From positions 186,001-250,000 of the forward strand of contig NW_003314270.1 of NCBI RefSeq assembly GCF_000143415.4: a stretch of 64,000 bases of DNA, in the 5' to 3' direction. The translations under genes were made by a program, and so were the position numbers. The notes below the pieces were generated by a model. That model did not search any database. It was not told the DNA's origin and saw only the letters and a program-made list of their open reading frames with translations. Positions 1,304 to 42,200 of this stretch are shown one piece after another. This stretch comes from Selaginella moellendorffii. Its lineage: Eukaryota; Plantae; Lycopodiophyta. Positions within the stretch are counted from its first letter, which is position 1, and each line of letters begins with the position of its first letter.

Positions 1304-2907
1304 TCACTTCAAGACATGAAGTGTGGACAGAGTTGGATCTGATGCTCCACTGATGGTAATTCCTGAAGCATGGGCTTGCTTCAAATAGCCAAGAGCCTCC
1401 TGCGAGACGAGCTCTCCACTCGAGGAAAGAGCACAGAAATACCAGGTGGATACGGGCACACGAGCTCAGCACTCGCTAGACCCACTGCTTCGTCAGCTTT
1501 GCAGCAGTAAGTTTCTGTAAAGAAAGCATCTCTTGGACTAACTAGTGCTTTCCATTTGATTTTCTTACAATCAGGCACTCAGGGTCTGGAATAAGGACCT
1601 ATTGTCGATCTGGAAGAACTCGAAAGCTCTTGAAAGCCTTTGATAAGTTTCTCAATGTCGCTGCTGCTAGTGCTGGCTCCTATAGCAAAAGTTATGGAGT
1701 TCAGAAGAGGAAGCTCGGCCACCACCTCGCATTTATCACACAGAAAGTCATCGGCAAGAGTTCCTGTGACTCCGAGCTCCCACAACCCAATGGTGATCCT
1801 AAGCTCATAAATAATGGTATCAGCTTTGGCTGCCAAGCTCACATTTTCTCTATCAAGGACTAAAACTTGTGGGATTTGTTTCAGGCGTCGTCGAAATGTG
1901 GAAGCCAGCTCCAGAGCTGTATCAAACAATGGATGGTCGTCGCTTGCTGCACAACTCATCTGGTCCCTTGCGGCATCGAGAGAGGCCAAGAGAAGGTAAC
2001 TCGGACTGAAGCTTTGCAAGGTTCGAAGGCACTTGCTAATTCTCTCGTGCTTTACAATCTCGCAGCCTCTCGCAAGATGGAGCATCCCGGACTGCGTAAG
2101 AGACGAGAGTACCTTATGCGTGGATTGGACAACAACGTCGGCTCCCTGCTCGAGTGCCGTTGCAGGAAACCTCGAGTGGAACATGAAGTGCGCTCCATGA
2201 GCCTCGTCAACTATGATCGGGATACCATGCTCGTGATACACCTTTGCGATCTCCTCCAGGGCTACACACTCCATAGTAAGTTGGCAAGACAATCAGAACA
2301 GCTCCAATTCTCACGTCTTTTCTTTTCTGCAGATCCAAAATGGCCAACTCGATGCTCTCTGCGGAGACACCACGAGAAATATTCCAGAGCTCGTCATAAC
2401 AAGGAAGAACATAGTGAGGCATTGCTCCAGCAAGAACCATGGCTGAGAATGCCGAGACGTGGGCGTTCCCGGGGAGGATCAAAACGTCTTCGGTCTTGCA
2501 GCAGCTCATGACCCCCGGTTGAATTCCACACGTAGAGCAAGAACCATGAGTACCCTTGGCGGCAGGAAGAGATCAGAGCGCTCAATTCCACTCCAGGCGA
2601 CGCTAATATCAGACTCCAGGGATCCATGTCATGCAGCTCCGAAAAGCACGGCGGCCATTTGCTGCGCTTTGGTGGCTTCTTGTGGCGAGTGCAAGTTATC
2701 CAGGCCTGGCAGCTCCGGGAGATCAAACTGGAAGGGTTGAGCTCCGAGAAGCTTGGAAATCGAAGAGGGCGCTGAGGAGCCGCGGCCGTGGCCTGGGAAG
2801 TGAAACGCAGCGACACGCTCCTCGCTGGTTCTCTTGGGAGCTTCTAGCAAAGGAGCTGAGAAAGAAGGGAGTAGTAACGGATTGAGCACCGTCGTCGGCA
2901 ACGCCAT
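1304..2907 (-). pseudogene. Orn/Lys/Arg decarboxylase (class I, PLP-dependent) pseudogene
   Basis: Motifs FHFPGH, DLPELPGLDNL, PTYYG, IVDEAHGAH, QSTHK (PLP lysine) and CPYPPG lie in different frames. In-frame TGA at 2629-2631 and 1579-1581; frameshifts near 2540, 2260 and 1420. The C-terminus GELVSQEALGYL...HVLK ends at 1304. Confidence 0.88.
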
Positions 2908-20073: not shown

Positions 20074-23000
20074 TCCTTCTTGAGTCTATCCACCATTACG
20101 ACACAAAGACCATCGAAAAGATCTAGAGAGGAAATAACAAAGTAAGATGAAAATATAGTAAAAAGTAATGGAGAAACAAAAGTCATGGAAGTAAAGGTAG
20201 AAGTGGAAGGATGAAAGAAAATAAAAGTGGGAGGAATAGAAGAAATATAAAAAAGTATGAAATGAAGTGAAAAAGCTTTAAAATCACACTTGGCATGATT
20301 GGGCCGTAACCAATTTATACCAAAGATGAGGTCAAAAGCTTAACTCAATACCACTCCCAACATTTAAAGTTTAAACTCGAGATCTTTCACATGCACAATT
20401 AAGTCCACATTATCTCACACATATGTATGTGTATGACCATTGTTATATAGAATGAAGATTAGCTCTATTGTATGACACAACTGTAGATGACAATATACAA
20501 CAATAGGTTGAGCAATAAAAAATAAACTCAAATATTTATTAACTAATCTGGAGAGAATAATAAAAGACCTCTTATTATAAAATAAGTTTGACAAGTAAAC
20601 ATTGGATGAACCGGTGCCCCACCCCTTTATAATATTCTTGAAAAAAAAATAGAAGGGTCACTAACTTATTTGCACAAGGACCTTTCACTAATTACACAAG
20701 TCTTCATTTCTCAGAAGAATCTTTGTATCAAGACCTTCCATGGCAACAACATCAACAAGACATCATTAACATTAAGGCCTCCACCCAAGAAATGAAGGAT
20801 GCCAATCCAGAAAATGTCAATAATGCTAATATATGTGGCCAACTTCATCACAAGCCTAACAATAGACATTGTTACTACGACTATATCCTTGTCCTTGTCC
20901 TTGAATACAAGCATCAATAGCATCAACCTCCATTAAAATAAGATTATTTCTCACAAGAAGTGGATCTGAAATATGTATAACAAGAAGTGGAAGAAGTAAT
21001 GTCTTATAACGTTGTATCAGTCAAAAAGCATTATCAAAGATGGTTGGAGCAAATGCATACTGAAGTCCTATAAAATTTTGACGAAATGTAGGCCATAATA
21101 TTCCCATAAATAAGGTATATTCTTACTTATGTTTATTTAAAATATAGTCATTTTTGCTATTGGGAAGGACTTAATCTACTCCAACATATTTGGCTCCACA
21201 CGAAGCAAAAGGCTCTAAAAGTAAATATCAAATTGCATCACTAACTCAGATGGCCCTTAATGAAAATGATGCAATTGTTAAAAGGCATCATCACAATTGT
21301 TAGTATATCCAAATGTATGCTTGAAGATATTCGGGAGAATACTCTAATCCATATAAATGGTTAAGTTTAAACCTTTATACCACTGCAATGCCATCCTTTA
21401 GAGACACATAGGAAACTTATATAAGCACTAAACATCATCCCAAGAATGATAAGTAGTAATCATTATAAAGTGATAAAACTAATGGTATATATCATCTTTA
21501 AGATTCCTAGAAAAGAACTTTAGTTGGACATAAGGATTGGCAACAAAAATAAAAGAAGCTATACCACCGTGAATGCCATTATCAACTAAGTCTAATTGTT
21601 CAATTACAGCCTCATAACATTTAATAACTACACTAATTGCTACTCTAGAGTCAAAGGAGGAGGAGGTTATTACTTTGCCATGAAGATGAATGAAAAGAAA
21701 AAAATAATTGAAAAGAAATTGAAAAAGTTACAAGAAAAGTAAAATTTAGATAGTGCAAAAGCTAAATCTAAACTAAAATCCCAAATCCAAACACTCTTTA
21801 GGGACAATTAAAATTGCCTCCCACCTCCACTAATGTGCATGCATGAAATATAGAAATGAAAAATGTATATATTAATTAGCCCAAAAAATCTAGTTTTATA
21901 TACATAAGTAAGAGGTTCGGATTGAAATTAATCTAACAGTTACCAAAATCTCACTATGTTAATATTAATATATGGCATTAGAGCCATATAGTTCCTTACA
22001 ACACATTTTAATTGCTTATATAGCAATTGAAAAGTGATTGTGTATATAATATTTTTGCATGCAACTCAAAATAAATAAATAAATCCACACATGTGTAAAT
22101 ATAATGACCATTGCCATAGTCTTTTCTTAGTGGGAATGGAATTGAGGGAGCAAGTAACACCATTTTTGATTCTTGCCCAAATGTGTATATTATATGTGTC
22201 AAATTTCCTTCTTCTCTCAAAACACCCCTAAACAATTATTAGTCGAGACAAAATCTTATCAAAATATTTCAGTAAGACAAGGTTAAATAAATTGTTATGC
22301 ATTGCATATAGCAATGCTTGGTTTTCTTAATAGTAGTGTTATTATTACTTATTAATCCAATTGATCAAATGAAGTTTATAATTATAAGCATGTTTTTAAT
22401 TTCTAATCACAATATTAATCTTATTACATATCAACCATTAAATGATAGAATAAAAAAGAATATACTAGAAATGGTTTAAGAAAGTTTATAAATTATAAAC
22501 ATAATGAATAAAAATCATTAGATGGTAGAATATCCTAGAATATCCAAGCATATTCTAGGTTTATCCACTACCATCTCCCTACAGGTTTGCTAAAGCAAAC
22601 CAAAAAATAACTCTTCAACATCCAACAACTGGATCTAATGGTTTAAAAAGTTTCTTGCAAAATATAAACCATAGCTGGGATGGATCATGATGTGACACAC
22701 TCAAGCATGCAAGCAAACATATCAAAGAGGTCTTTTTAGTTTGTGCTCCCTGATGCTACAAAATGCTGCAACATAAACTTGGACTAGTACTGGACACAAT
22801 TTGATCACATTTTTTCAGCTGTGTTAAGCAGTAAGTTCCTCTCAAAATACAGGCTAATCAAGTGTTCTGTCACAACACATTGAGAAGTGGAGGTGGATAT
22901 GGAATCTGAACTATTAAACTATAAATAATTTGACCAGCTATGATTGTAAAAGTCAACCAGGAACAGCTTGAAGATGTCAATTATGACATTCTGTAGTCTT

Positions 23001-23128
23001 CATTTTCAGGCGGTATGACTAACTTCGTGCACGCGAAAATTTAGAGAAGCAAGCATTTGCTGGGCTAGTCAATTGACCACGTGTTGCATTCGTGATAAAT
23101 TGATTGATGGGTCACAAAACCAGCAAGA

Positions 23129-23413
23129 ATGAGGAGATTTAGCATCACTTTCATTGTGGCGATGGTGATACTACTACATTTGCAGCTTCACTTCGTATGG
23201 CCTCTCTTTGGTAGTTCTTCCTCGGCCACTGCACCATTCACAATCAACAAGGGGATTGTGAGAAAGCTGCTGGAGGAAGCTCCTCCTCCAAATCCTAGTA
23301 AGTATTCGTTTGAAAATCTTTAGCTTTCTCTTTACCATCGCTGCAAATTTCCAGCCGAATTTGGAGAATTTCGACCGGGGAATCGTCAGCCACCCCTCTG
23401 CTGCAACCCATAA
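23129..23413 (+). CDS. Small secreted peptide precursor, copy 1 (75 aa; exons 23129-23297, 23355-23413)
   Basis: Signal-like MRRFSITFIVAMVILLHL; RKLL; phase-1 GT-AG intron; C-terminus TEFGEFRPGNRQPPLCCNP-stop. Confidence 0.8.
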
Positions 23414-24678
23414 AACGCGATTCGAAAAGCCCCATCCCATATCTCACAACGGGAAATGCTGACTTCACAAAGATAAAGAACTAAGAATCACAAAGATATC
23501 CTTAACATTTTTCTCTTGTATAAAACAATGGACAGCTCCGTACAGTCCGGAATAAATAGAAAGGTAGCATACTTCTGCAAAACTACTATGCTCTAGAATT
23601 ACCCGGTGGAGCTCGCGGCCAACTTCGGTGAGAGAATGGACAAGGCCAGCTGATTATTCTCTCGAATAATCAAGCATTGGGTGGCAATTTATCCATCGTG
23701 AGAATGAACAAGGTAGCCAAGGAGCTGCTCATGCAGATGGTGGCCAAGCATCCCGTGGTCACAAATGTGCGTTGCAGGGAATCTGAGCGCATGCAATGGC
23801 TGGGGCTTAACTAATACACAGGGACACTACAATGGCAGCTTGAATGGCATCCCCTGTTGTTGTTACGACTGGAAGTCCTGAACCATCTTTGACCAGAGCT
23901 GTAACGTTTTCTTTCGGTCTTGGAGTGGTGTTGGTGAGATTGTGTTCTTGAAAATATTTCTAATACTACTTGAACTATATGAACGACTACATACGAAACA
24001 CAGCAGGATCAAATTCTGTCCCGTGCAAGTTGTCATGTTCTCAGAGGAAAGTCCATGTTCATTTTGTACGAGTCATGTTTGATCTTCGAGCATACTTTAC
24101 ATGAATTAGAAATATATTTTGGGGTTAGAAGAAAACTTTGCGAACTGGTTTTGAATCTTGTGGCTGTGAGACTGCGGAAGAAGTCAAAGAGAAGCCAAGT
24201 AGAAAGTTGCAAATGTTTATCACCAGCAGTGTTGCAATTCTTGCTGATTGTGCGGCAACATGTGAACTCCTATCCCACATGATTGGTGGTAATCTTTTTT
24301 TTATTCTGTGTAAATTTGCCACAAGGAACAATCCTAGTTTGCCGAGTAGTACATATATTTATTCAAGTCATGTAAATTTTTGTGGAGGTGCAAAGTTACG
24401 TAATCAAGTCAGAACCGGGGCTTTTCCGAAGGCGAGCCTGGGGTGGTGGACCAAGACGAAAAAGACGCTCCAGATGCATGGGGTGAAGAACTTGAGTCCC
24501 GTGTCCGACTTGATCTTGACAAATCTTCAATCTCCGTTATCAGGCGGATAACCACGAGTTTAGATCTTTTTAAGAGCTTACCTTTTAACGAAGAAGCCAT
24601 TTGCCTAGTGGCCGCGTGTTGCATTGCAGCTTGTGATAAATGCATAGTGCTCGCAGAGATCTCACAAAACCAGAAAGG

Positions 24679-24934
24679 ATGAGAAGATTTCATAAGGCTT
24701 TTATCACGGCGATGGTGATACTACTACATTTGGAATGTCACTTCTCAGGTGGTACTCGCGTTCTTTTTAATAGTTCTTCATCAACAATCAACGAGCTTCA
24801 AAATGAGTGAGAGCTGTGGCAGTCTGAGGACGGGTATCTTAGTAAGTTTTCGAATAAAAATCTTTCGCTTTCTGATCTTGCTCAAGTTTCTAGCGGATGC
24901 TCAAGGATTGCCACCCTCCTGTTCCAACCTCTAA
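24679..24934 (+). pseudogene. Small secreted peptide precursor, copy 2 (nonsense mutation)
   Basis: MRRFHKAFITAMVILLHL...; in-frame TGA at 24808-24810; same intron position (24842-24893); shortened C-terminus TDAQGLPPSCSNL-stop. Confidence 0.75.
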
Positions 24935-26441
24935 CGGACGAAGAATCACAGCCGAAGACTGGGCTGCCTCAAGCTTCGGTCAAGAAGCTGCTAGTACCTT
25001 GTATGAAATTTGCTATGTTATTCTAAATTTGTTTTTCGTTCATGATCCCTCAAATGTTAATTTGATGTTGTTGTTGTTGTTGGTATTATTCCTCTGCTTG
25101 CTTTGGCCATGAACCCCATCTTCATGATCATTATCATCCATCCCATGCATTAGAGAACTAGAAAATGGTTCTACCACTGATGAATCATGCTCAGCAACAC
25201 CATTATCCAAAGACAAAAGCTCCCTTCCGCACAAAGCTGAAAAAGGCAATGCTTTGGCAAATGCAACAAGAAACACCACCAAAGCAGACTTCACTAGAGC
25301 TTAATAATGCCTGCTGATTGCTTATGGTTGAGAATACTCATTGATTACACCCCTGTGTTAAGTAGGGCAAAATGTCAGGATGGCCGGTCTAAGTTGGTAG
25401 ACTCAACCTCACGAGGGTGTGTGTTCCAATTCCACTTTGACAGTTAGTTACATTCATCCAGCACACAGTTTTATAGAGTTGTAAAGTTGACAGTAGCAAG
25501 GTGGTAGAAGAATACTGTTCAATTTGGTGTACTGCATTTGCAACTTCATGCAATACATTGAACTGCCCCGTCAAAGGCTAGTTATAGCCTTATGGTTATC
25601 TCTTTGCCTCATACTTCAAGCAACACTGGTCGTCTTTGGTGGCCGGTTTGGGTGCCAACCTCCGAATGGCTTCAACTTAAAGTAGAGAACTAAAGGTTTT
25701 TCCGCATATGTTCAGGCAGGCACAACGAACAGCCTTAGCCGTTAAAGCCTGGGAAGCAATGCCCGGTAATTCTTTGCTTCGTTGGAAGTAGTACTCTTGC
25801 ATTGGGGTAAGGGACGAACCGAATATTTTCAATTAATAGTGGTGCAAAATCTAGTGACTGAGGTCGAGAGATCAAGGAGAGGTTTGCAATGCAAGGTGGC
25901 TGGCTGTCTCATGAAATCCTGGGTCGGAGTTAATCTTGGGAGGTGCTGCACTCGCTAGCACTTAATCTCGCGAGCTCTTCTCTTTTGCTCGGTTGCTGGG
26001 AGGCGAGTTCCTGCTGCAAAGCGAGCGCTTCTCTCCCGGCGAGTGCTCCTATTCCTGCAAGCTTCCTGTTGCTTGAACGGAACTGACTTGGATGTATTGC
26101 ATAGTGGCCCCATGATCGTGGGCTTATCCATTTGTTGGGTTTCTCATCTGCTATTGCTTTATTCAAGCCATGAAATTTGTTGTGGAGGTGCTGTACAGAC
26201 CACAACAGAACTATTTTACATTATCAAGTCAGAAACGTGTCCAAGTGACAAATCTTCAGTCTCCTTTTTCAGGCGGATAACCACGAGTTTAGATTTTAAC
26301 TGCTTTCTTTGTGAAAAAGCTTGCCTTTTGACGAAGAAGCTTACGAGTAAGAATTTGCCACTCCCTAGTGGGCTAGTCAATACACCGCATGCTACATTGC
26401 AGCTATAAATGGATAGTGCTGGGAGAGATGGGTCAGAAAGG

Positions 26442-26752
26442 ATGAGGAGGAGATTTCATAAGGCTTTTATCATGGAGATGGTGATACTACTACAATTGGA
26501 ACGTCACTTGGCAGGTGCTACTCGTGTTCTCTTTGATAGTTCTTCATCAACCACTGCACCATTCACACTCAGCGAGCGTCGAAATGTGTGGAGAGTGCGA
26601 AAACTGCTGGACTCCCCATCAAATGTGGACTGGCAGAGTCGTGGTAATTTTTCATGTGAAAGTCTTTTAGTTTTCTATTGCTCAATTTTCTAGCAGTCGA
26701 TCGAAATTTTCGACCGAAGAGTCGCCAGCCACCCTCCTGTTGCAAGCCATAA
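26442..26752 (+). CDS. Small secreted peptide precursor, copy 3 (86 aa; exons 26442-26643, 26694-26752)
   Basis: MRRRFHKAFIMEMVILLQL...RKLL; phase-1 intron; C-terminus AVDRNFRPKSRQPPSCCKP-stop. Confidence 0.8.
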
Positions 26753-27773
26753 AGGAAAGAATCAAAGACTCAACTCATGAATAATTTGCTGATTGCGGCA
26801 TTTGGTTATTTAATTTTTAAAAATATTTTCGAAATGATATTAAAACTTGATCTATGTTAGATTGTTATTGTAACATTCGCACAGAGACTGGAGACATTGC
26901 AATTACATCTACTACGTTTCAGCAAGCTTACAAACCAAGAAATATACCGGGGCAAATTCGCTATTTTAGAATGGCGCTGGTGATGAGTGGCTGGATCTTC
27001 CATCGCTAGCAGCTGGGATCAGTAGCAGAGGGAGTTTTCTTGATCGATTTTGTATCCCTTATTGTGTAAAGGATGAGAGAAACAGAATCTTTTCATATTC
27101 CTGTAGAGTCTTTTCTTGCATAAGATAGCTGTTAAATTTAATCCGTCCATTCAAAATCTAACGGTTCGGGTGGGCCCAAACAAGTGAGCACTGAAGATTG
27201 TGGAATGACTCTGACGGATAAATGTGAGAAATCCCAGATCAAGAGGAAAACAACAATTGCCTATGGCCGGGTAAGTCCTTTGACCGGCCCAATCCAATCT
27301 CCACTTTCCAAGAACAACAGCACCTCTATAAGGCATTGCAATCATCCGATGATCACCAGGGCCCAATGGGCAGGATTTGCACAGCACTTTTTAGAAGGAG
27401 CTTGTAGGCTTGGAAGGGACTAGCAACAAAAGAAGTGATCTTTTGCATTCTTTCCACACAGGAATGCTACTTGAGCTCCACTGCCTGATTGACGTGCTTG
27501 AGATGCTGACCATGAAGCAGAGATTAGACGAGCTTCCTACCTGCTTGCAAGACTCAGGATGAGCTTCCTGTAGATCTTCTCATCACTTCAAATATAATAT
27601 CACTATTTGGAGAGGGCTACAAAACCTGCAAAAGCTATATCAACCAAAGAATATGTTAAATATATACTTGGAGTGTTTAAATTATAAATATGTTTATAAT
27701 TTATAAACAGCTAGATTATACTTTGGTTTGCAATTAGAATTAGGGCACAAGGTTACTTACATTCCCGCGCAGG

Positions 27774-28823
27774 ATGCCGCAAAGAGGAGCGATCTCCAGC
27801 GGCAAATTCGTGGCAGAGCTGGAGCTCGTCTTCTTCAGGCTGTCGGCGATCGATCTGTGCCAGGCCAGGTGCGTGTGCCGCGAATGGCGACGAGCAATCG
27901 ACGATCCCAGCTTCCGCCAAGGCTACGCGCGCTCCCACCGCTGCATCCCTCACCTCTGCCTCCTCCTCGACTCTGGATCCCTCCTTGTCAAGCCGGTGGA
28001 GCCGAATTCCCCGCGCTGCGAGTGGCGCCACTTCCAGACGCTCCCCACGGACATGACCATCGCCAGCACCGACGCGGGCTTGCTGTGCCTGGCCACCTTT
28101 GCGAAGTGGTGGGTGCCATCCTCCATCTTCGTGTGGCGCTACAGCGATCTCAACTCCTCCCCGGCGAGAGTTCCTTTGCCGCCAGTGAACAACCATGACA
28201 CGGACTTGACGGTGTACCGCCGCGAGAGGGATCGATCCACGCGAGAGTTTTGCGTCGCAAGCTTCGACCGGCCATCGCTCGCCTTCTACATCTACGACTC
28301 GGCGTCGGGCGAGTGGTCCTTGCGTGAGAACGAAGACTACCCAGACTCAGGGGCCATGCTCGACGAGAATGGGTTCTATCCGATCCTGGATCACGGCGAG
28401 GTGGTGGTGCTCTGCACAGATACCTGGAGCCTCGCGAGATACAACGTGTGGCATGATTCCTGGCGCATTTTCAAGCTTGATAGCTGCGAGTTGGAGTTCG
28501 GAGAGACGTGGTCCTTGCTTCAGCTGGATCGGGATCGGCTGTTCGTGGTTAGTGACGAAGGACAGGCGGAAGATCGCGAGGGGCTGATTGTCGCTGAGAG
28601 GCGGGGAGACAAGTGGGAGATTGTTTCGAGGCGAGACGAAGAGTTTGATGATTTGCTGGTGAGAGCGAGAGAGGTGTGCACTGATGGGAGCAACAGTATA
28701 TGGCTGGTTGACCGGGTTAACTCGCGGATTGTGCACTTTGGAGTCGATTCCAGGAGCTGGTCATTGGAGGAGGCGCCCGACGGTGTGACAGGATTCAAGG
28801 AGCTTGCTTGGTTCTCTTGTTAG
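27774..28823 (+). CDS. F-box protein (single exon, beta-rich C-terminal domain)
   Basis: N-terminal F-box ELELVFFRLSAIDLCQARCVCREWRRAIDDPSF; IASTDAGLLCL and YIYDSASGEW motifs typical of plant F-box/kelch-like proteins. Confidence 0.88.
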   Translation: MPQRGAISSGKFVAELELVFFRLSAIDLCQARCVCREWRRAIDDPSFRQGYARSHRCIPHLCLLLDSGSLLVKPVEPNSPRCEWRHFQTLPTDMTIASTDAGLLCLATFAKWWVPSSIFVWRYSDLNSSPARVPLPPVNNHDTDLTVYRRERDRSTREFCVASFDRPSLAFYIYDSASGEWSLRENEDYPDSGAMLDENGFYPILDHGEVVVLCTDTWSLARYNVWHDSWRIFKLDSCELEFGETWSLLQLDRDRLFVVSDEGQAEDREGLIVAERRGDKWEIVSRRDEEFDDLLVRAREVCTDGSNSIWLVDRVNSRIVHFGVDSRSWSLEEAPDGVTGFKELAWFSC

Positions 28824-30140
28824 TGCTGAAAACTGGGAGCTCTTCTCGAAGAAGATCCAGGAGCTGTGAGCTACTGCTGTGATGATCGGCATCGGGTGGT
28901 AAATCGCTGCTTTGGGAAAAACAAGATTGAGCATGTTTGTGACACTGACGAAAAGTGTGCAAAGTTCGCGAGAGGAAGAAAAGTGGTGCCGAATTTCCGG
29001 GTGTGATAAACGCGCCTCCTTCCACAGAAGCAAGAAAAGGTTTGTCTTCCGATGAGTTTCATGATTGTGCCAAGGCAGGAGAGATTTTGGTCTACCGGCT
29101 GGAGGTCTTGGGAGCTCAAATGGTAATAATGGGTACTTCTCTCTTTGTGAAGTAGCCTGCGCTCGCGGATTTATTAGTTTCGGTCGATCGATCTCAAGCC
29201 GTGCACTGTGCAATGCGCTCGAATTGCTTAGTTAATCTTGAAACAATTTCTACGTTTGAGCTGGAGTGGGGACGTGGCAGTGATTTTTGAAGCTGTGTCG
29301 CGGTTAGTACTACTTGAACTATATGAATGAATATGAAACAGAAGAAAGTTGTGACTTTGCAGCCGAACTGGTTTCGAAGCTTGTGGTTATGAGACTGCGG
29401 AGAGTAGCAAGTTGGAAATGTTTTATCACCATATAAGTGTTACAAAATATCTTCATTCTTGCTGATTGTGTGACCATTTCTCATGAAGCTGCAACATGAT
29501 TGGTGGTGATAAATTTGCCAAAAGGAACACCCCTGGGAAGTCGAGTGTCGGTGTATACGTTGGAAACACAATGTCTACATACATTGTTGTTTCCTCCTCT
29601 TCTATATATTTATTCAAGTTATGTAAGGTTTTGTATATGATGATAAAACATTTCTCGTTTGCTATGTTTCTTGTTCTGTAACACAACACCAGAAGAAGAA
29701 CTGTGGTCAAAGACGGTCCAATACTTCCAGTCATAGCGCATAACCATGCAACAACGAGGCCAAGGCATAGCTTACAGTGTCCCTGCTTATTAAGCCCGCT
29801 TTCAAGCTTTCATCGTACCTGCGATGGACACGTGTAAGCACGGAATGCTTGGCAACCATCCGTATGAACTGATACTTGTTCATCCTCACGATGGATGAAT
29901 CAACGCCTGATGGTTGATTATTATTCTGGCTGGGTTCTCTCACCAAAGTTGGCAATGGCGGTAGTAACCGAGATTGCATCGGAGCCATTTAGCTTGGTAA
30001 ACGCCACTCCACTCTACCCTGTCAGGTGACAGTTCCGAGCCTCACGCTCAACTTTTCTGTCAAGGCCTCTAGCTCATTCTCGTCACATCATTTGGAATCC
30101 CGAATGCGTTTCTAAAGAGCACCTTTAAGTCTATCAAAGG

Positions 30141-30290
30141 ATGTGGCAAAGAGGAGCGTGGCAGCTCATCTTCTTCAGGATGTCAGCAATCAATCTGTGC
30201 CAGGCTTGCATGTGCCGCAAATGGCGAGAGCAATTAACGATCCCAGCTTCTGCCAAGGCTATGCGCTGCATCCCTCACCTCTCACCTCTC
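30141..30290 (+). pseudogene. Truncated F-box paralog of 27774-28823
   Basis: QLIFFRMSAINLCQACMCRKWR...CIPHL matches the 5' end of the F-box gene, with deletions and a frameshift. Confidence 0.75.
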
Positions 30291-30989
30291 CAATCAAACG
30301 TTAAAATTGGTTTAAGACCAACGGCTTAGATTGGTTCAGAGGTTTGCAAACCAAACAATATCAGTAGAGGTGGCATTGTGCGCGCCATTCTTCTTGCAGC
30401 TGCCAACACTGTCGCGGCTCCTGCCTTAATCTGCAACCTCGGGATTTGCTTCATGAGCTCTACGACGCAAGGATGAGCCTGATTTTCGCGTGCCCGGCAC
30501 TTACAAGGAAACCACCTAGTACTTACTTGAGAAATCCGGGCACTGGAAGATTCATTTGGAACATTGTATTAAAGTTTTGAGGCTTGCTGAAAAAACTTAT
30601 TCTTGCTTTGGTTGGTAAAAGATTAGTATTCTATATACAGCTGTAACTATCATGTGATTGAGGAAACATATACAATCTTACACCCATCTTTGTTTTTCCC
30701 TTGGAAGATATATTAACAACTAGAATATTTTAGATTATACTAGTTGAAAGTTGAGTATTCAAAACTTTCTAAAGGACTTCTACTTAGTTTAAAGGGTATA
30801 ACTGAATAAAGGCCGAAGGAGTTATTCATTTTTCTTTTCCACCTCCACCTCGGGCCACCAATGCATCTCATGGGAACTCACCTTGCTCTTGAATCCAATT
30901 GAATCTCATGAATAAACAATGAAAGGACACGCAAGTAAGTTTAAGGAAACCCGCTAGTTCATTCTGAATGTTTTTTTTCCTTGCGATCT

Positions 30990-31440
30990 CTTTTGCAGGC
31001 ACCCCCAAGAGCTGCACTTCTTCATGTCCACCTTGCTCACAGCCTTGTGAGACTGCTTTCACAGCAGATGCTTCCTGGAACTGCGAGCATTTCAGCTGTG
31101 CCTCGAGATCTGCCCCTGCTGTGACAACCCCTGCACGAAGCGCCTCGCTTGTGGCCATTCTGTGTGGAGAGCCTTGCCCAAGTGTCTGCCGCCAGAAATC
31201 ACACACATGACTCTGCGGAGAGTGAGAGCTCTGACAGATTCATTGAGCTTACCGACTGCAGCCACATCTTCGAGGTGGCTATGCTTGACCAGTGGATGGA
31301 TATGGTCACAGTGCGGCAATCGCTCTCAAAACTTCCAATTCCATATCTGATTTTGCTAACACTTGGAAGTCCACAAGCTGTATAATTGGACAGCGTTCGT
31401 CCAGACGGAAGTCCATGCACAAGATTAGGCATGCAAATGC
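30990..31440 (+). pseudogene. Second ZNFX1-like zinc-finger fragment (inverted paralog of ~11270-11830)
   Basis: CPPCSQPCE, WNCEHFSC, LCGEPCPSVCR, ESESSDRFIELTDCSHIFEVAMLDQWMDM; broken frames. Confidence 0.75.
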
Positions 31441-31899
31441 TAAGCAGGAAACAATACAAGAAAGCACGCCGCAGAAGCCATCGAACACGCTGGGAGAAAA
31501 AAAGCTGAATCTAGACTTGCTGGTCACAAATCAAGGCCATGAGTACGTCCCTTTGTTAAGTGATCAATTGCGGGATGAGGAAGTTAAAGCACGCAGTCAC
31601 TCATGCCCCTTATAGCCGACGAAGTCTGAAGCTTGCCAGCGCCACGGCTCAAGCACGCCCAGGCTATACTCCGCTCGACGTCGACTCCAACAGCTTAACT
31701 CGAGCTCCATCGCACCTCCAAGCAAATCTCTCCCGATCCAGGCGCGCATCAATTGGGGATCCGCGCTAAGGATGTGAGATTGCTCTCAGGCGCGACAGGA
31801 ACAACGCCAGCGCTCGAAGCTTGGAAGCATCGCCAGGTAGTGGTAGCCGTGGAGCGTGCCCACGGAAAGGTTCCCATCTCTATGTGAGGAATTTGCGCG

Positions 31900-32150
31900 G
31901 TGCCCCGCATTGTAAACTCTTCATCTTGTTGGTAGAAATTCTTGATATTGTACAAAAATTTGAAGCGTGGTAAAATAAATTATAGGTCTTCATCTGAAAA
32001 CTTAGGACTTTGATGATACCAAACTCGTTTTGAAGCTTGTTGATTGTGAGAGGTGTAGTGCCTGAGGAAGAAGTATCAAAGAGAAGCATTAAGTTGCAAA
32101 TGTTGGATCACCATCGCCATGGTGGAAGTGTTGCAGAATCTCCTCAAATG
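31900..32150 (-). pseudogene. Small secreted peptide precursor, inverted degraded copy 5
   Basis: The minus strand reads ...RRFCNTSTMAMVIQHLQL / LLFDTSSSGTTPLTINKLQNE. The start codon is lost, it is frameshifted, and no CC motif is recognisable. Confidence 0.6.
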
Positions 32151-32655
32151 AGAACATGATTGTGTGGTTTTCACGTGCTGCAACACACAATATGTTTGAC
32201 TAGCCCACTAGGCATTGGCAGCCACTTGCAAGGTTGTGAGGACTAGTATTCTTGTCTTTGCATTTGACTCATACTTTTCGGGTACCACGGACTGAGTCTG
32301 CTTGTAAGATTTGTCCCAAGTTCATCTTTCAGATAACTTAGAGTAGGGAACAAGCCTAACTCAAGTGAGCTGGGACTAAACTTTCCAAGCCAGAAAAAAA
32401 TGAAGAAACTTGGAACTTACGGGTTCGAAATCTTGACAAATCTTTAGTCCTCGTTCTCGGGCGGAATCTGGAAACATGAGGAGTCAAATGCAAAAACTCA
32501 TGATAACTAGAAGTTTAGATTTTAACTGCTTTGTTGTTTTAACGAAGAAGATTGTAAGCATTTGCCACTGCCTAGTGGGCTAGTCAATCAATACACCGCG
32601 TGTTGCATTGCATCTCCTGATAAATTGCAGAGATGGGTCTACAAAACCAGCAAAA

Positions 32656-32927
32656 ATGAGGAGATATTTCAACACTATCATCATAGCGATGTTCATACTA
32701 CTCCATTTGGAACTTCACTTCTCAGGTGCTACTCGCCTTCTCTTTGATAGTTCTTCATCAGCACTCACAATCGACGAGCTTCGGAATGAGCGGAGAACAC
32801 TTGAGTTTGAGCAAACTCCTAGTAAATTTTTGTATGAAAATCGTTAGTTTTCTCTTTACCACTTCTAGCAGAATATCGAGAAATGCGACCGCGGAATCCT
32901 GGACCACCCCCCTGTTGCAACCCATAA
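32656..32927 (+). CDS. Small secreted peptide precursor, copy 4 (74 aa; exons 32656-32821, 32869-32927)
   Basis: MRRYFNTIIIAMFILLHLELHFSGATRLL...RRTL; phase-1 intron; C-terminus TEYREMRPRNPGPPPCCNP-stop. Confidence 0.8.
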
Positions 32928-33260: not shown

Positions 33261-36200
33261 CTACAACACTACCATACACGCCAGGCTCGACGGTGGCTGG
33301 CCATCATCCCTGTGCACCACGAAAGTCCGGGCCTCATTCGCCACTCTCCAAAGCCTGCACGTCAAAAACGCTGCACCGCCCGGCGATGGACTCCTCAGGA
33401 GCGCTGGCTCCACGTAAACCGCCTGCGTTGTGTGTTTACTAAGTACACAAAACACCACCTCCACCTCAGGCTCGTAGAAGTCGGCCACCGTGACGCATCC
33501 CACCGAGACATATCCGGGTGGAGCTCGGGGCATCCAGATTGTGAGAGGGGATGGGCCTTGCTCTCGCCAGACCTGTGAAGTTCGAGAAGTTTAGTCCTGT
33601 GTAGGATAGTTTCTTTTACCTGATCAAAGCCTTGAGGATGGAGGAAGATCTGGTCGGAAAGAGGATACACGAGCACACTCTCAGGCTGGTCATGAGCAGC
33701 GTGAGCGACGTCTCCAACGGTGGCATATCTACAAACCAGAGGAGTCTTAGACAATAAGAAAGAAAGAAAAGAAAAGAAAAAGAGTGTCATGACTATCACT
33801 CACCCGGACGGACAGGCCGGTCGCCAAATGGATATGGGGTTGGTTTCACCATCGGGATCACCCTGTTAGAGAGAAACTTGTGAGCACGAAAAGAAACCGG
33901 CCAAGATCCACGTACCTGGTTCGACCATATGAGATCAAAATCACTGATGAACCTTCCGGCTCTTGGAGAACCAGTGGACGAGCCTTCGTCGATGCTCAAA
34001 ACTTTGTCCGTGGCAGCATCCGACTCTTTTGCTAGAAGTGAGCTCCGGTGCGCGGAGCCAAGCAATGCACCAAACGTAGCCAGCATTGGTATGGAAACCG
34101 GAGCTGCAGGCCCAGCTAAAAGTCCAAGTGCAGGAGCCGCGCTTGAACTAGATCCTGCGTATGGTCTACTTCCTGGCTTTAGCTTCATACTCTGAAAATC
34201 TACTATAAGAAAAACAAGGAAGAGAAGTAGAACACACTAACCTCTGAACGAATAGCGGCGCGTTCAGGTCCGAATGTTTCATACGCTCTTTGAATTGATG
34301 CCATTATCTCCGCGGGCTGATTGGTACCAGGATGACACTTCACGACACGCATAGTTTCTCTCGTGTCGAATATGGAGGTCTCCTGGCCGGATGTCCGAAG
34401 GTGCAAGATCAACCGCGATGGTTTAGGCTCATGCGGCTCCTTGGTTTCCTGCTTGCCGATAGCTAGCTCCATTGTCATGAGTTCTCCCCATGTCACGTCC
34501 CAGACAATAGTGCACGGGTTTTTTAACAAGTCGGGCTTCTTCTGCACCAGAATGCCAGTCGGATGCTGCAAAACAAGAAGTGAGGAGTTGACGAAGAGAA
34601 AAAAAGAAAGAGCAACTCGTTCCGTTACCTGCAACAAGATCACTCGCCGATGGGTGATAATCAGTGTACGAGCTTTAGGAAGATTAAAGTGGTCCTCGTA
34701 TGCATCTGATGCCGCAAATTTCCCACGAATTTTAAAGATGTCTACGGGTCCAAAAAGAGTTCCTCGTTGGGCCAGTTGCAATAGCACCTAAGGAAGCAAA
34801 CGTTTCGTATATAAAGTTTGCAAAGAACCTCAAGAATACCTGTCCTTGAGCTTTGTACTCATCGTATGGGCGGAGAATGTTGTCACCGCCAATAACTCTG
34901 GGCAAACGACGACGCCGGAGCTGTTCCTCGGACGTGAGAACAGCTGCCAGCTTCATTCTCGTAGCATTGGCTCCTTCAGTAGTTTTCGACAGCAGGTCAA
35001 GCACGCCACTCATCGGCTGCACTGCTGCACCGATAACTCCCTTCCCAACACCTTGAAGAAATCCCTCCACTCCCGCCGAACGAGCACCTTCCAGTGGCTT
35101 TGTTAATATCCCGGTCACCCCCCTGAAAAATCCTTTGGCAAGGGCCTCGCCACCTTCACGAATACCATCACCTATGTCTTCTACTGCCGCCTTTGTCTCC
35201 TGAACAATCAAGTGGAAGTTGTAAGTTGTGAAGAGTGAGAAACTTTGGATACGTACATGCTTTTGACGGCTCCGGATAAACTTTTTATCCATCGAGAGTG
35301 CAGCAACGCCTTTGCTCATGTGTCCCAACGCGCTGCTCGCATTTCCCAAAAGATCCACACCAGATAATAGCTTGAGAGGTTGACTGAGCATATCGTTACG
35401 AACACTTGCGATTGCAGCTGCAACCAGCGCACTTTGACTCATGCATATGTTTTCGTGGACATGAGGCGTAATGCGAACCTAGAAGCCATGAATTAGCTCT
35501 TTCCTGCTGAAGAATAAAAACAGCGTACCGGCATATCATCGGTGTTGCCAAGGGAAGTAAGAAGCGTGGACCAGAATCCAAGAACTCCGCGAGGCCGCTG
35601 TGTTGGAGACATTGCTAAGGTCACCTTGAAGCGTATCTCCGACGTATTCAGCAGTCTGTAAGTGCAAAATATAATAAGGAACACAGGCTTGAGAAAAAAA
35701 GCTGACACTATCTTACCCAATGCTAATAATCGGATCCAGAGCTACAGCAGTCGTCTGGCTGCTTCTTAACTGTCCCAAGTTTAGTCGGGTGAACATTTCA
35801 TGAAGCCGCCAGATGATTGGTTCGTGAATATTCACCAAAAATGAAACGTTTGGAACGTTCGGACCCTGAAATTCTCAGTATAAGCAACCAAAAAAGCATG
35901 CAACACGAGTAATACCTGGATGCCGATGTATGGGTAAACCTGCTGATCCGACAAACTGTTCTCCTTCAGAGTCACTGTAAACTTCAACAAGAACTCGCAA
36001 TTCTTTGCAGTGTCCTGAGGCGAGAAAAGCACAGGCATGGGAGTCAATGGCAGCTGATTATCAACTTGGAGGCCGTCCACTTTTACTTTAAACCTGTAAG
36101 CAGACCATTAGAAGAGATCCAACTTAACGAACACAAAGTTACCTGCTGATTTGCGATCCAAGTCCTGTAGAATATGAAACAAAGAAGTTTATCACGGACA

Positions 36201-39200
36201 GGTAGAGGAGTTCCTCCGGAGTGTGATCAACAATCGACAGTCCAAGCTCGGCCAGTTCTATTGACGTGTGGAACTGGTTCTCCGCTTGGCTAGTTTGAGT
36301 TCGCTCGGGAAGCTGAGTGGAGGATGATGACACAGGAACAATACTCATGTCCTCGGGTCTTGTGATCGAATTGGTCACGGAAACCAGGTGAATGGCACCA
36401 TCACGATGAACCTTAACTTGCAAAACCGGACCCGGACTACTCGAAGTAATAAGCTGATGAGTTCTGGCTTCATCAATTTTGTACGTCTGTGATGAATGCG
36501 GATCCGCTCCCTCGACGTTGATCTCCAGCATGCGAGGGAGATCAAGATCCTCCCATGCAAACGTATCACAGCTCCCGGCTGGTAGATGTTGCCAGGATTC
36601 AGAAGATGTACCTTCCTGTCGATAGTTGATTGAGACTGTGGACTTGTTCTCAATCCTGGGAAAGCAATGTAAATAGAGGAAGTTTTGACAGTAGAAAGGC
36701 TATACCTGTATGGCCCATGAATTGAAGCGTATCGAAAAATGACCAGCTGCGAGGCATGCCTAGATCCGCTTCGCACCTCTATGCGAATATAGAGTTTGGA
36801 GCTGCCGTTTGTACTTGTTAGTTTCAAGTGTGTTGTTCCAATAGTCTCAATGTTGAAGGGCGGGCTCCATTTGTAGCCCTCGAGATAGACCTGCATTTTA
36901 AATTCAGTACAAAGCTTGAAAAGTGTGACCTTTCTGTGTTGGCATACCTTGAGAAGTTCAGGCTCATCACTTGTGCGCCACACAAATGTTTTCGGCGTTT
37001 GATTGGGATATAGAAAGTCTTGAGCTTGTATATCACCTTGACGAATCTGTAGCCTTTTGCCAAGCCTGTTGATGAACACTGAATGAGGCTGAAAACGGAC
37101 AACCTGCACATATTTAAAGCCGTGAGAAAACTTCAACGGATTTTCCGTCTAAACGAACCTTGGTTCTCTCAGATGATAGATCCAAAGTGGTTGTCAGCTT
37201 TACATATCCACCGTTTGAATCGTATGCCTTCACAACTATGAGATCCTTCTGAAAACAGTCCAAATGCATTTATAAGAGAAAAAAACAGAGAAGAAGAAAC
37301 TACTTACATTATCCTCCAATTCTCTGAACGAAAAGCCGTATTTGAAGTTGTCGCTGTCTGCAGCAGACACAGCTAGCCCAATACGAGGCGAAAGCACGTC
37401 CTCCACTCGAGGAGCATTCGGGAGTGGACCTAGTCGGTCCAGTTGAGCGTGAGGCGAAAGCATGAGCGGGGCAGGAGAGCTTTCTATGACATCAAGAACG
37501 CGAGTAACGGGCAGCATCCTTGCTTTTCTTGCAGGTGTAGCCAGTTTAGAATTCCTCGTGCCCTTCGGTGTAGAAAGAGGCTCCGAGCTTTCGACTTCAA
37601 CCACTCTATAGGCCAGTGGTAACCCGGTATCGTTGGATATCCAGTATGGCACGAGCAAACGCACGGTTTTAGCAGCCAGAAGTGAGCTTCCAAAGTCATA
37701 CTCCAGGCTTACGCGTAGCCTCCTGCAGGATACCATTGTTTAGAACACACGCTATAAAATCCTGACGCACCTGTTGCTAGCATGATGCACCATCCAGAAC
37801 CCAAGAGGAAGGTCTTCAGACTTTGGATCAAAAATAAGGACGCCTTCCTGCAAGCAAGGCAAGCTTATTTCGAAAATAAGACTTAAGAACATAGAAAACG
37901 TACCTTCTCTGGTCTCCAGCCACCTTGTGGCAGCCACGTTAAGAAGATCTGCCTCCTTATATCCGCAGCGTAGACACAAACAGAGTCACCGGCTGAAGCT
38001 ATCCCATGCTGCCGTTTGACCGGCCTGGCCTCATTTATCTTCTCCCAGATTATGTACTCTGCGTTGCAAGGCAGAAGGTTTTCCAGCCGCAAGGGTGCGT
38101 TCACTGATAATCTCCAGTCGTAAATTTGAGTGTTTAAGTCGCCAGACAGGATAGTAGCATCCGCTTCCATGCTGAGCCAGCAATGGCCTTTTGAGCTTGT
38201 CATATCAGCCGTGACGCATAGTAGCAGCTGTTCTCTTTTCTCAAGGTGGCCCAACGTGAAATCCTGTGAGGAGATGTTGCTTTTACTCTGCTTGATAGAC
38301 TTTCTTGGCGTGGATGAGTTCGCAGCAATGGGATTTGGATCGCTTATTAACCGACCCCACAGATAACTTCCGCATGTGTCTGTCACCGGACGAACTTGAG
38401 CACAGTAATCTGCCTGACGAGCAGTGCTTGCAAGAGGCAGCTGGATGGACGACCCCGGTTGTATCACTCCCACCACCTCTCTTTTGTGCGCCTTCTTGTT
38501 GTCTGGCACACGTTGTCTAGTGCGGATCCAACGTCGTCGTCGAACAAAATCGAAAGTGGACTTCCTCGATGCCTTAGAAGAAACTGGCAGCGTCCTTAAG
38601 CTCTGGAAGTCCGGACCGTAGAACCAGCCGTCTTGATCTACGTTTCCAGAAAGATCCACTGTCCAGTCTGAAGTCCAAATCCAGCCCGGCGGCAACTGAA
38701 CCTTTAGTATTTCCTACAAGAGGATACACTCAAGTCAGTTCAAGCAATTCTACAAATGATCGACTTTGTACCTGAGATGATTGAGTAAAATCTCGCGTAC
38801 TCCACCGTCCGGGATCGGTCGGAATAAGATGTCCCGGCCATTTGCTTCCCCACCCTGCTAAAGGTTGATATCTTTGGTTCTCAAAGCATTCTTCGTCAAC
38901 ACGAGTAGAATTGTCTAAAGATGTAGCGCCACCATCTGTGTCATTCGGCGTATGGAGCAGAGAATATGGGCATATAGCCACTTCCAACGCCATGTCTGTG
39001 TTGTTTGCGACGATAACCAAACTCCGAAACGTAGCATGCTTTCGACCCTGATCCATCGTTACGTCCACAGCAACTTGTTGCTCACCAACTGTTTTGGGAA
39101 TTGTTGCTAATGGTAGCACGCACCGCAAGCTTTCCCAAGGACCATCAGAACGGCACGAAAACAGCAGGCCATAGTCTTTCGTCGGCAGTTTCTCATCCTT

Positions 39201-42200
39201 GTCACGTCGCCAATCTGGTGCAGTAGAGAAGAAGTAAAGCTGAACAGCTATGTTGCCACACTCTTGAGACTGCAGCTCTGCAATGTTTCCCTGCACAGCC
39301 AACCATTAGCTAAACTAGCATTGCAAATGTCAGCTGTATATACCCGCTTTCGAGGCGGTCTCAAGGAGAGAATTTTGGCTTGAGCAGCTGGCCAGGATTC
39401 TTGACTAATCGACTGCCTGACCATTTTCCACAACGTCGAAGGTTGAGATACTTTATGACTCGCTTCTTCTTTCACAGGAAGTGAGAGAATACCGACTGCC
39501 TCTCCTGCAAAGAGTAATAAAACATATGGAACTTCAAGTAACAAAGAAGAAAGTACCTTTTCCACTTCTAGCAGCTTGATTGGTAATAACCACTTCCAAA
39601 TTCACAGACCCCTGTGTGCTAAACAATCAATACTGTAAAGAAACAGTAATGAAATTACTTACCTGTGACGGAACTTCAAAAATGAAAACTTCATTCCAGC
39701 TTGCTGAAGCCCGGGACAGGGACTGCACGTCATTTGGACGCACGCAACGAGATCTAGCACTTTGTGGGAGCGCTTTCGGATCTTCAGGTAGCTGCTTCGT
39801 AGTCACTAAACGAAGAGCACACAGAAAATCGGGACAATTACCATCATCATTTACCAACAAGCCCTGCATCGACAAGCCGTTAACAATGTAGATAACAAAA
39901 TAATGTAAATTACCTTTGCTTCAAGCACGTGAACTGCGACAAATTGCCGGGATGGTTTTTGAACCCCGCTTGCCAGCTTGTCGGGAAAGCTAGGGGGTGG
40001 CAAAGGAATAATGGACGTTTCTCCTTCTTGCAGCACTTCTACATTCTCAAAGCCGCTTCGGAAAGTTCTCAGGTAGAGCTCAGAAAAGAGCATATTTTGA
40101 ACTACAAGCTTCTCACTGTCATCTTCCTCCAATGCAGCTTTGCCCGTCATTCCTGCTTTGTAATCCGTTTTCTCCTATCATCACAACCATACGCAGTCAG
40201 TGTATGTATTCCATCAAGAAAGAAAAATTATACCGTCCTCATCGCGCTTAGCGCCTCTTGTTCCGACTCGGTTTGCTTTTGCCAGACAGCCATAGCTCCT
40301 ATCAGAGCTTCCAGGCTAGCAGATGTAATATTAATGCTGACCGTGCTGGCTGCGGTGATTCGAACACGTCTACCAATCTTTAACGTTGCATCCGAATCCC
40401 CACCATAGAACTCGTATCTATAGCCAAACACAGAAACAAGCACGGTAAGGTCATGGCTAGAAACTTATAAAAGGTGTCACATACTTCAGAATGCCATCAA
40501 ATGGTTCAATCAGTGGTTCCCAAGCATCAAGGCTCGCGTTGAACGTGGACGCAGCAATCGATGTCAATGCCACGGCATTCAGAGCATCCGGTCGACCATG
40601 GGCTGCTAAGTTGACACCGGTTAAAGTCGCATTAACAAGAGGTGTTGCCTGCAATAACAAAGTTACTAGTGTTTTAAAACAATATATAAAAAACTGCGCA
40701 TACCATGCCAGAAAGATCGTCAACGACAGTAACCGATAAACGTCCAAGTTTCATTTCGGCAGTCAGGTTTTCCCGGACTTTAGGCCGTCCAGTTTCGGCA
40801 AGGAAGTATGCCATCCGCACGAGAGGCTTTTTCAAGTCAGCACGAGCAATGAAAGTGCTAGCCTGCATACAAAAAGTCGTGGAATGAGCCAAAATGATAT
40901 GAGATCTTGAAGATACCTGGTTCTCCACTTTCCACAAGCAGCAGCTGTGACCACCACGGCTGCCTATATAGCTCCACACTGGACGCTTGGAAAGACTTCC
41001 TTGACTCACAAGATCCATACGAACGCACCGGACCATATCAAGTGGAGGATGATCAGGCGTTGTTGTTGCAACACATCCCAAGGCAACATAGCCCGCCGGT
41101 GCGACTGGATACCAGATGTACACATCTTCAAGGCCTCTCCCACAAATGTGAACCTTTTGCTGGAAACGAATGGGTTTACAGAGACGTCCTGTGCCATCAT
41201 CACGTAAAACTAATCCAATGCCTGGTGGCTCGAGCCTGAAAAACAAAAAGAAACGTTCAAACTTCCTCTGTGACTGAAAGACTTCACGTACCCGTCAACG
41301 ATGCTGTCGCCAACAATTGCATACCCGCTGGCTGGGATAGGCCGCCAAATCGAAACCATGCGTCTGGTTTCCGTGCCTTTGTCCCACCAAAGCCTTTCAA
41401 ACTGAGGAGTAGTCAAGGAGTTTCTGCTAGCTCGTGGTGCAGGATGAGGCGTACGTTCCACCACTTTAACTTCGACAGCGTCGTCCGTTCTCTCGGTCGG
41501 ACTACTCAAGTGATTCAGAACTAGGTGACGCAGGTCGCACAACATATCCTTTTGTGGTGGATTAACAGAAGAGCGTGCAAAAAAGGAGCCAATCGTGTTG
41601 TCTACACGCCAAATGCTGCAACCATCCGCATAGTCCCTTCACAGGAAACACAAAAGCTTAGCTTCTTCACCGAAAGAAAGAAACAAGACTCAGCTAAATA
41701 CCTGTCACCAGGAGGAATGCACAGAACGCAGTCTGTGACTGCACTCGATGTCAAAAGGTCCGATCTGACGCAGTGGACAGTATTTAAAGAGGGAGGAAAA
41801 GTTCCTCGCTCGGCCACACAGCCAACGGCTTTGTATCCTGGCGGCGCAACCGGGAGCCAAACACAGCATGGTTCTTCATTGAAAACTGAGTTGCTGGAAT
41901 TCCCATACGAGCTCCAGACAAGGTCGAACTTTAAAGGCTTTTTAACTCGATGGTGAGAATTGAAAACAGCTACAACCCCTTGAGACGGGGGTGCCGTCCT
42001 GCAAATGCAAAAGATCAGTACATAATTTTTTTTCTCGCCACGAAGAATCACTCACCCCGAGGTTACACAATCGCTTAATATCACGTAGCCAGGAGGAACT
42101 TTTGGCCTCCAGAAAGTAACTTCGGGCGAAGAAGTATTCCCTGCGGTGATACGAAAGTTAAGAACAATAATTAATCAAAGACCAGCTTAAACCTGGCTTG

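Follow-up and report, generated by a model that had tools for sequence, protein, structure and literature searches.

Canonical CEPs, as defined by Ogilvie et al. (PMC4197245), combine a secretion signal with a domain close to the profile compiled by these authors. The part of the domain conserved across seed plants corresponds to positions 7-15, [PS]GHSPG[VI]GH, with positions 1-5 being variable and F2 absent in Poaceae (PMC4197245). The GxGH end is common to CEP and PIP (Furumizu et al., PMC8462819), and peptides of the CLE/IDA/PIP/RGF/CIF type end in His/Asn (HN, HH, GH) (PMC8462819). The origin of CEP and of its receptor CEPR has been placed in seed plants (PMC4197245, PMC8462819): no CEP was reported in Selaginella moellendorffii, from a scan of unspliced open reading frames (ORFs) (PMC4197245), and the CEPR subclade arises after the lycophyte split, Selaginella having three undifferentiated receptors of the HSL clade (PMC8462819). 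Here we describe a cluster of small two-exon genes found in 64,000 nucleotides (nt) of S. moellendorffii DNA (RefSeq assembly GCF_000143415.4, contig NW_003314270.1, positions 186,001 to 250,000; hereafter the window, from the first nucleotide of which all coordinates are counted). Their predicted products end in a vicinal Cys-Cys pair, and they constitute an unannotated family, new within a known kind, namely putative small secreted peptide precursors, and expressed at a low level.

Three copies of the gene are intact and lie on the + strand; we refer to them as c1, c3 and c5 (starting at 23129, 26442 and 32656, respectively) and to a + strand pseudogene as c2. All three two-exon models translate in full, to products of 75 amino acids (aa) for c1, 86 aa for c3 and 74 aa for c5, exactly as written in the sequence-only reading from which this analysis started, including the phase-1 introns and the last exons of 59 nt. 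c1 is composed of exon 1 (23129..23297), an intron of 57 nt (23298..23354) and exon 2 (23355..23413), which ends with EFGEFRPGNRQPPLCCNP and the stop codon. c3 is composed of exon 1 (26442..26643), a predicted intron of 50 nt (26644..26693) and exon 2 (26694..26752), ending with VDRNFRPKSRQPPSCCKP and the stop codon, and c5 of exon 1 (32656..32821), a predicted intron of 47 nt (32822..32868) and exon 2 (32869..32927), ending with EYREMRPRNPGPPPCCNP and the stop codon. Each intron starts with GT, ends with AG and is in phase 1, and exon 2 has the same length of 59 nt in all three genes. The C-termini (EFRPGNRQPPLCCNP in c1, NFRPKSRQPPSCCKP in c3 and EMRPRNPGPPPCCNP in c5) take the common form [F/M]RP-x4-PP-x-CC-x-P-stop, all terminating in CC-[NK]-P, with exactly two Cys, adjacent to each other, in the tail. 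In the six-frame translation of the 64-kb window CC-x-P-stop occurs three times, always at c1, c3 and c5 and each time after [F/M]RP...PP. From ~100 nt upstream of the ATG through the stop codon the copies, which are clear paralogues, exhibit 65-80% identity, and directly past the stop codon the similarity falls to background (29-38% identity).

The predicted 74-86 aa precursors appear to follow the general layout of plant small secreted peptides, with a signal-like N-terminus, a variable pro-region and a short Pro-containing C-terminal peptide, in agreement with the sequence-only reading, which had recognized the hydrophobic N-terminus, the basic RKLL/RRTL site and the variable pro-region now located in c1, c3 and c5. 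The N-termini start with MRR..., followed by ITFIVAMVILL (the signal-like hydrophobic core, or h-region, of c1) or IIIAMFILLHL, and then by a run of four Ser residues. The maximum Kyte-Doolittle mean over 11 residues reaches 3.2 in c1 and 3.0 in c5, the h-region of which is likewise signal-like, and 2.2 in c3. A basic R-x-x-L site, of a kind used by plant subtilases, is aligned in the three pro-regions, as RKLL in c1 (23261-23272), RKLL in c3 (26598-26609) and RRTL in c5 (32791-32802). A cut at this site would yield C-terminal peptides of 27 (c1), 30 (c3) and 25 (c5) residues, with an acidic N-terminus and Pro-rich and basic toward the Cys pair. RKLL is a documented processing motif of plant pro-proteins, namely pro-PMEs, and the subtilase SBT6.1/S1P processes proRALF23 (10.1101/2022.07.28.501549); for RALF23, an RRIL-type site cleaved by S1P is given in work cited by the same source. 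The 15-residue boundary of the mature peptide in the sequence-only reading was borrowed from CEP and finds no independent support here. We infer that the precursor would enter the endoplasmic reticulum and that a subtilase would cut it after R-x-x-L, freeing a C-terminal peptide of 25-30 residues that may be trimmed further. The prolines of this peptide would be candidates for hydroxylation, the terminal Cys pair may form a vicinal or an inter-chain disulfide, and the product would act outside the cell.

The family resembles CEP in having a small precursor in which an N-terminal secretion signal (signal-like here) and a variable region precede a short, Pro-containing peptide at the C-terminus, and in having [F/M]-R-P at positions 2-4 of the 15-mer; some CEP genes likewise stop right after the peptide domain (PMC4197245). 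However, instead of the SPGxGH core and the C-terminal His of CEP, the family ends in PP-x-CC-x-P. It also differs from CEP by its two Cys, by the phase-1 intron preceding the peptide exon and by the fact that other parts of the precursor are better conserved than the peptide, and its host is a lycophyte without reported CEPs or the CEPR subclade, whereas CEPs are hosted by seed plants (PMC4197245, PMC8462819). The CEP core positions 7-15 are matched in 0/9 cases in c1, 0/9 in c3 and 3/9 in c5. The likeness that extends over the whole family is limited to R3-P4, plus F2 in two copies, and falls in the half of the CEP domain that is variable, the N-terminal one. The six identities between c5 and Arabidopsis CEP1 listed in the sequence-only reading were recovered in the ungapped register (6/15 residues; P ~0.001 by shuffling, for a single comparison, uncorrected for selecting among copies, families and registers). 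Much of this match is due to N-P-G, in place of which c1 and c3 have R-Q, and the absence of N-P-G from the paralogues suggests that N-P-G in c5 is either derived or matches by chance. The link to CEP proposed in that reading is therefore not sustained, given the core matches of 0/9, 0/9 and 3/9, the missing GxGH end and a family-wide agreement reduced to R3-P4. Judged by CEP's own defining features the family is not a CEP, and deep common ancestry with CEP appears to us highly doubtful.

Other ligands of leucine-rich repeat receptor-like kinases of subfamily XI (LRR-RLK XI), i.e. CLE, IDA, PIP, RGF/GLV and CIF, share with the Selaginella family the pre-pro-peptide layout, the Pro-rich mature region, basic processing sites of the subtilase type and tandem expansion. 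Unlike the Selaginella family, none of them ends in Cys-Cys-x-Pro, and the Selaginella family in turn shows no DY sulfation motif and no Pfam or profile match. RALF, EPF/EPFL, defensin-like and other fast-evolving secreted peptides are similar in that a signal (signal-like here) is followed by a pro-region and in their birth-and-death evolution, and cysteine-rich peptides also keep a Cys scaffold while the residues in between vary. However, RALF, EPF and defensin-like peptides have at least four Cys in a folded domain, as opposed to the two adjacent Cys of the Selaginella family, which make a disulfide-stabilised fold impossible; moreover, compared with cysteine-rich peptides the putative mature part is far shorter and exhibits no sequence similarity. 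To our knowledge, a vicinal Cys pair at the C-terminus of a Pro-rich peptide has not been described for any signalling peptide of plants.

Transcription of c1 is supported by RNA-seq data, for which three runs carrying the same species label (X1-X3) were mapped on 22900-28899, with ~12% of each run being read. Four reads of run X1, each starting at a different position, connect 23297 to 23355 and skip exactly the predicted intron of c1, which confirms the boundaries 23298-23354 that had been put forward for such a check. Mate orientation in these reads is equal to that in all reads of an F-box gene on the + strand, which indicates that the c1 RNA derives from the + strand as well. The coverage is limited to bins 23100-23499 and matches a small mRNA of ~300-400 nt. 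Hence, c1 is transcribed and correctly spliced. The F-box gene, taken as a positive control, had a read depth of 2-6. Downstream of c1, 34 nt of its 3' flank (23431-23464) match opposite-orientation reads found in runs X2 and X3 and twice in X1, with A>G at 23448; foreign sequence on both sides of the match suggests that another expressed locus contains this short element in the inverted sense.

Database searches revealed no relatives of the family. The spliced c1 and c5 proteins retrieved no candidate, not even a self-match, from a word-indexed collection of 5.8 billion proteins; as this collection includes the RefSeq proteins of S. moellendorffii, the blank result means that the family is unannotated there. 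A profile built from four exon-1 translations was searched against 1.84 billion representatives, a size at which relatives scoring below ~40 bits are invisible. It gave a single marginal match (E = 4e-4) to a 554-aa protein, which was rejected as low-complexity, involving the poly-Ser part of the profile. Neither exon-1 nor exon-2 frames had a match in Pfam, the ESM Atlas returned uninformative, unnamed plant clusters for exon 1 of c1 (best score: 0.78), and Rfam reported nothing on 22-34 kb. No transposon domains were detected in or beside the cluster, and a transposon as the carrier of the repeats was discarded on this ground and because the unit has its own TATA-like box, ATG, intron and stop. 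In addition, two F-box loci of S. moellendorffii (GCA_000143415.2) that are paralogous to the F-box gene of the cluster harbor no family member. The claim of the sequence-only reading that the family is lineage-restricted and undescribed is thus supported by the absence of relatives and annotation in the 5.8-billion and 1.84-billion collections. Its expectation that scans limited to ORFs would miss the family, the motif of which requires splicing, is supported too.

In addition to the intact genes the cluster contains at least four decayed copies, where the sequence-only reading had counted two pseudogenes, so that at least seven copies are present within 10 kb. c2 (24679..24934, + strand; its start had been given as 24680 and is corrected here) has a stop at codon 44 of exon 1, and its exon-2 homologue carries an 18-nt deletion, has lost FRP and reads PPSCSNL. 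At least three exon-1 relics with lost start codons and frameshifts are found on the - strand: one at 24140..24270 (..GDKHLQL..LLFDFF..), one at 29360..29475 and one at 32024..32146, in which the start codon is lost and the frame shifted, with ...RRF..AMVI..HLQL / LLFDTSSS..TINK still legible. These copy numbers fit a birth-and-death pattern. The minus-strand relics lie upstream of + strand copies, or of the sites where such copies would be expected, at a distance of ~400-600 nt. The presence of a relic ~500 nt upstream of several + strand copies points to a head-to-head gene pair as the possible ancestral unit, subsequently duplicated as a whole. A long hairpin formed by the minus-strand relics and the plus-strand copies was considered and rejected, as complementarity between the arms, over 45-63 nt, is just 71-85%. 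Two segments of 48 nt, at 23665-23712 (downstream of c1) and 29875-29922 (near the relic at 29.4 kb), form an inverted repeat with 81% complementarity, which is part of a further repeated segment.

The similarity upstream of the start codons comprises a conserved block, represented in front of c1 (23061..23128, + strand) by GTGTTGCAT, followed by ATAAAT and a short upstream ATG. The block is also present at 24612-24678, 26369-26441 and 32576-32655, and a perfect CACGTG within it is confined to c1. The ATAAAT box lies 34-43 nt ahead of the main ATG (at 23095, 24636, 26405 and 32620). An upstream ATG in the context ATGGGTC is common to c1, c3 and c5, where it opens an upstream ORF of 5-11 codons overlapping the main ATG (23107-23142, 26428-26445 and 32633-32659, respectively). 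The pseudogene c2 lacks it and has AGATCTC in its place.

The pattern of length changes argues that the coding capacity of the intact copies has been kept. Exon 1 is 169 nt long in c1, 202 nt in c3 and 166 nt in c5, and the differences (33, 36 and 3 nt) are all multiples of three. They are made up of several gap blocks (3, 9, 9 and 18 nt) that are independent of one another, as seen both in the protein alignment and in an alignment of the DNA made without regard to codons. No indel separates the three copies in exon 2. In contrast, the introns differ in length by 7, 10 and 3 nt, and indels that are not multiples of three abound upstream of the genes. In a simulation restricted to substitutions, with 12% divergence per lineage, the ATG, GT, AG, open frame and stop were all kept with a probability of ~0.10-0.15 per copy; by a rough estimate, the frame-preserving indels lower the survival per copy to the order of 0.02, a value at which three intact copies out of seven would be unlikely under neutrality. 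Within the C-terminal 15-mer, seven residues (R, P, P, P, C, C and P) are invariant. Thus, the reading frame, along with a few residues of the scaffold, appears to have been maintained. The reading that we favor, and to which we assign a somewhat better than even chance, is that the family is a lineage-specific, fast-evolving, birth-and-death set of small two-exon secreted pre-pro-peptide genes, spread by local duplication. The combination of fixed scaffold residues with intervening residues that differ non-synonymously would point to extracellular peptides diversified among the paralogues, phytocytokine-like or defence-like, more than to a conserved hormone of development.

A number of observations weigh against this reading, and several of them would be expected if the cluster consisted of young orphan or proto-gene repeats, that is, of a duplicated segment with a promoter, a small ORF and a short intron that is weakly transcribed and gives rise to no functional peptide. 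The ratio of non-synonymous to synonymous changes (dN/dS), calculated by the Nei-Gojobori method for the three short paralogues, is 0.5-1.0 over the whole coding sequence; for the N-terminal 36 codons it is ~0.6-0.9, and for the C-terminal 14-18 codons 0.9-1.7. These values do not demonstrate the purifying selection that the sequence-only reading had in view for the 15-mer, although with three paralogues of this length the result is an absence of evidence and not evidence of neutrality. In classical peptide-hormone families the mature peptide is the most constrained part of the precursor, and the Selaginella family shows the opposite. Exon 2 (71-80% nucleotide identity between copies) is no better conserved than the intron (64-83%). 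Synonymous sites of the seven invariant codons hardly vary either, so that limited divergence time could account for the conservation of these codons, and the pseudogene c2 has accumulated no more lineage-specific changes than the intact copies. Within the family RNA support is confined to c1 and to one of the three runs: its depth in X1 is 1-2, runs X2 and X3 contain no c1 transcript, and c3 has no reads in any of X1-X3. c3 also has the weaker hydrophobic segment, with a Glu inside the h-region, and the proximity of ATAAAT to the ATG together with the overlapping upstream ORF calls for caution as to the 5' end of the mRNA and the translation of the main ORF. A proto-gene origin would account for dN/dS of ~1, for the roughly equal conservation of exon and intron, for the pseudogene evolving at the rate of the intact copies, for the decay of the majority of copies, for very low expression in one sample only and for the lack of relatives in the collections searched. 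It does not readily explain why the changes of exon-1 length in intact copies are all frame-preserving and those of the intron are not, why the start, both splice sites, the position of the stop and R-x-x-L persist in three copies at ~25-30% divergence, or why the similarity ends exactly at the stop codon. We therefore view it as a possible but rather unlikely explanation.

Two further interpretations concern the nature of the product. In one of them the cluster is a divergent lycophyte branch of CEP, in which the 15-mer would share its origin with the CEP domain and an LRR-RLK of the HSL/CEPR clade would be its receptor. The 6/15 match of c5 to CEP1, the [F/M]RP at positions 2-4 in all copies and the same order of signal, variable region and C-terminal peptide are compatible with this idea, but the core is matched at 0/9 positions in c1 and c3 and at 3/9 in c5, the terminal GxGH/His is absent, and the agreement lies where the CEP domain varies, in its N-terminal half. 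The literature also contains no S. moellendorffii CEP and places CEPR after the lycophyte split, though the scans used unspliced ORFs; altogether, we consider a CEP branch very improbable. Equally little likelihood is given to the broader proposal that the cluster is the lycophyte representative of an ancient FRP...PP superfamily ancestral to the seed-plant CEPs and perceived by HSL-clade receptors. If that were true, the origin of CEP-type signalling would move back to the ancestor of vascular plants, and the Cys-Cys-x-Pro end would be a new C-terminal receptor anchor or mark a dimerising ligand. In the other interpretation the product is not secreted and remains membrane-anchored or lipid-modified, with an uncleaved N-terminal anchor and the Cys-Cys pair as an acylation or metal site. 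The hydrophobic segment of 11-15 residues preceded by basic residues would suit such an anchor, and terminal CC-x-x resembles dicysteine lipidation motifs. However, a transmembrane helix would usually be longer than this h-region, the stretch of small residues (G/S/A) behind it is as at signal-peptidase sites, and the R-x-x-L site together with the Pro-rich tail is typical of secreted pro-peptides, so that retention in the membrane seems very improbable compared with the secreted pre-pro-peptides that we favor.

The window as a whole is plant nuclear DNA with genes for PPR and PPR-DYW proteins, VPS13, a decarboxylase fragment and an F-box protein. A PPR gene is located at 7-1236, an Orn/Lys/Arg-decarboxylase-like fragment at 1579-2292 (- strand), exons of the VPS13 gene at 34203-39302 (- strand), and a PPR gene followed by a PPR-E-DYW deaminase ORF at 57366-59977. 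The F-box gene (27774-28823, + strand), situated between c3 and c5, is intronless and encodes 349 aa, with the Pfam F-box at residues 16-48, and is expressed in X1-X3. Its only relatives in the collection of 5.8 billion proteins are LOC112342417 and LOC112349304 of S. moellendorffii (62-69% identity). A decayed copy of the 5' end of the F-box gene was found at 30140-30300. Many of the reads differ from the window by 1-5%, which indicates that the RNA sample represents a different haplotype or accession. For four neighboring ORFs, among them the F-box gene, which was looked up in the gene-position collection, no exact gene-product record was found.

Because small spliced ORFs escape annotation, families of peptide ligands outside of seed plants are poorly catalogued. 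The cluster described here is best taken as a lead for plant peptide biologists, with one weakly expressed gene and two further predicted ones, and does not call for a revision of CEP evolution. As an expressed and unannotated family it illustrates what surveys of unspliced ORFs (PMC4197245) miss, and it supplies candidate orphan ligands for the HSL/XI receptors of lycophytes. If the peptide is made, its C-terminal vicinal Cys pair on a Pro-rich peptide would represent new chemistry.

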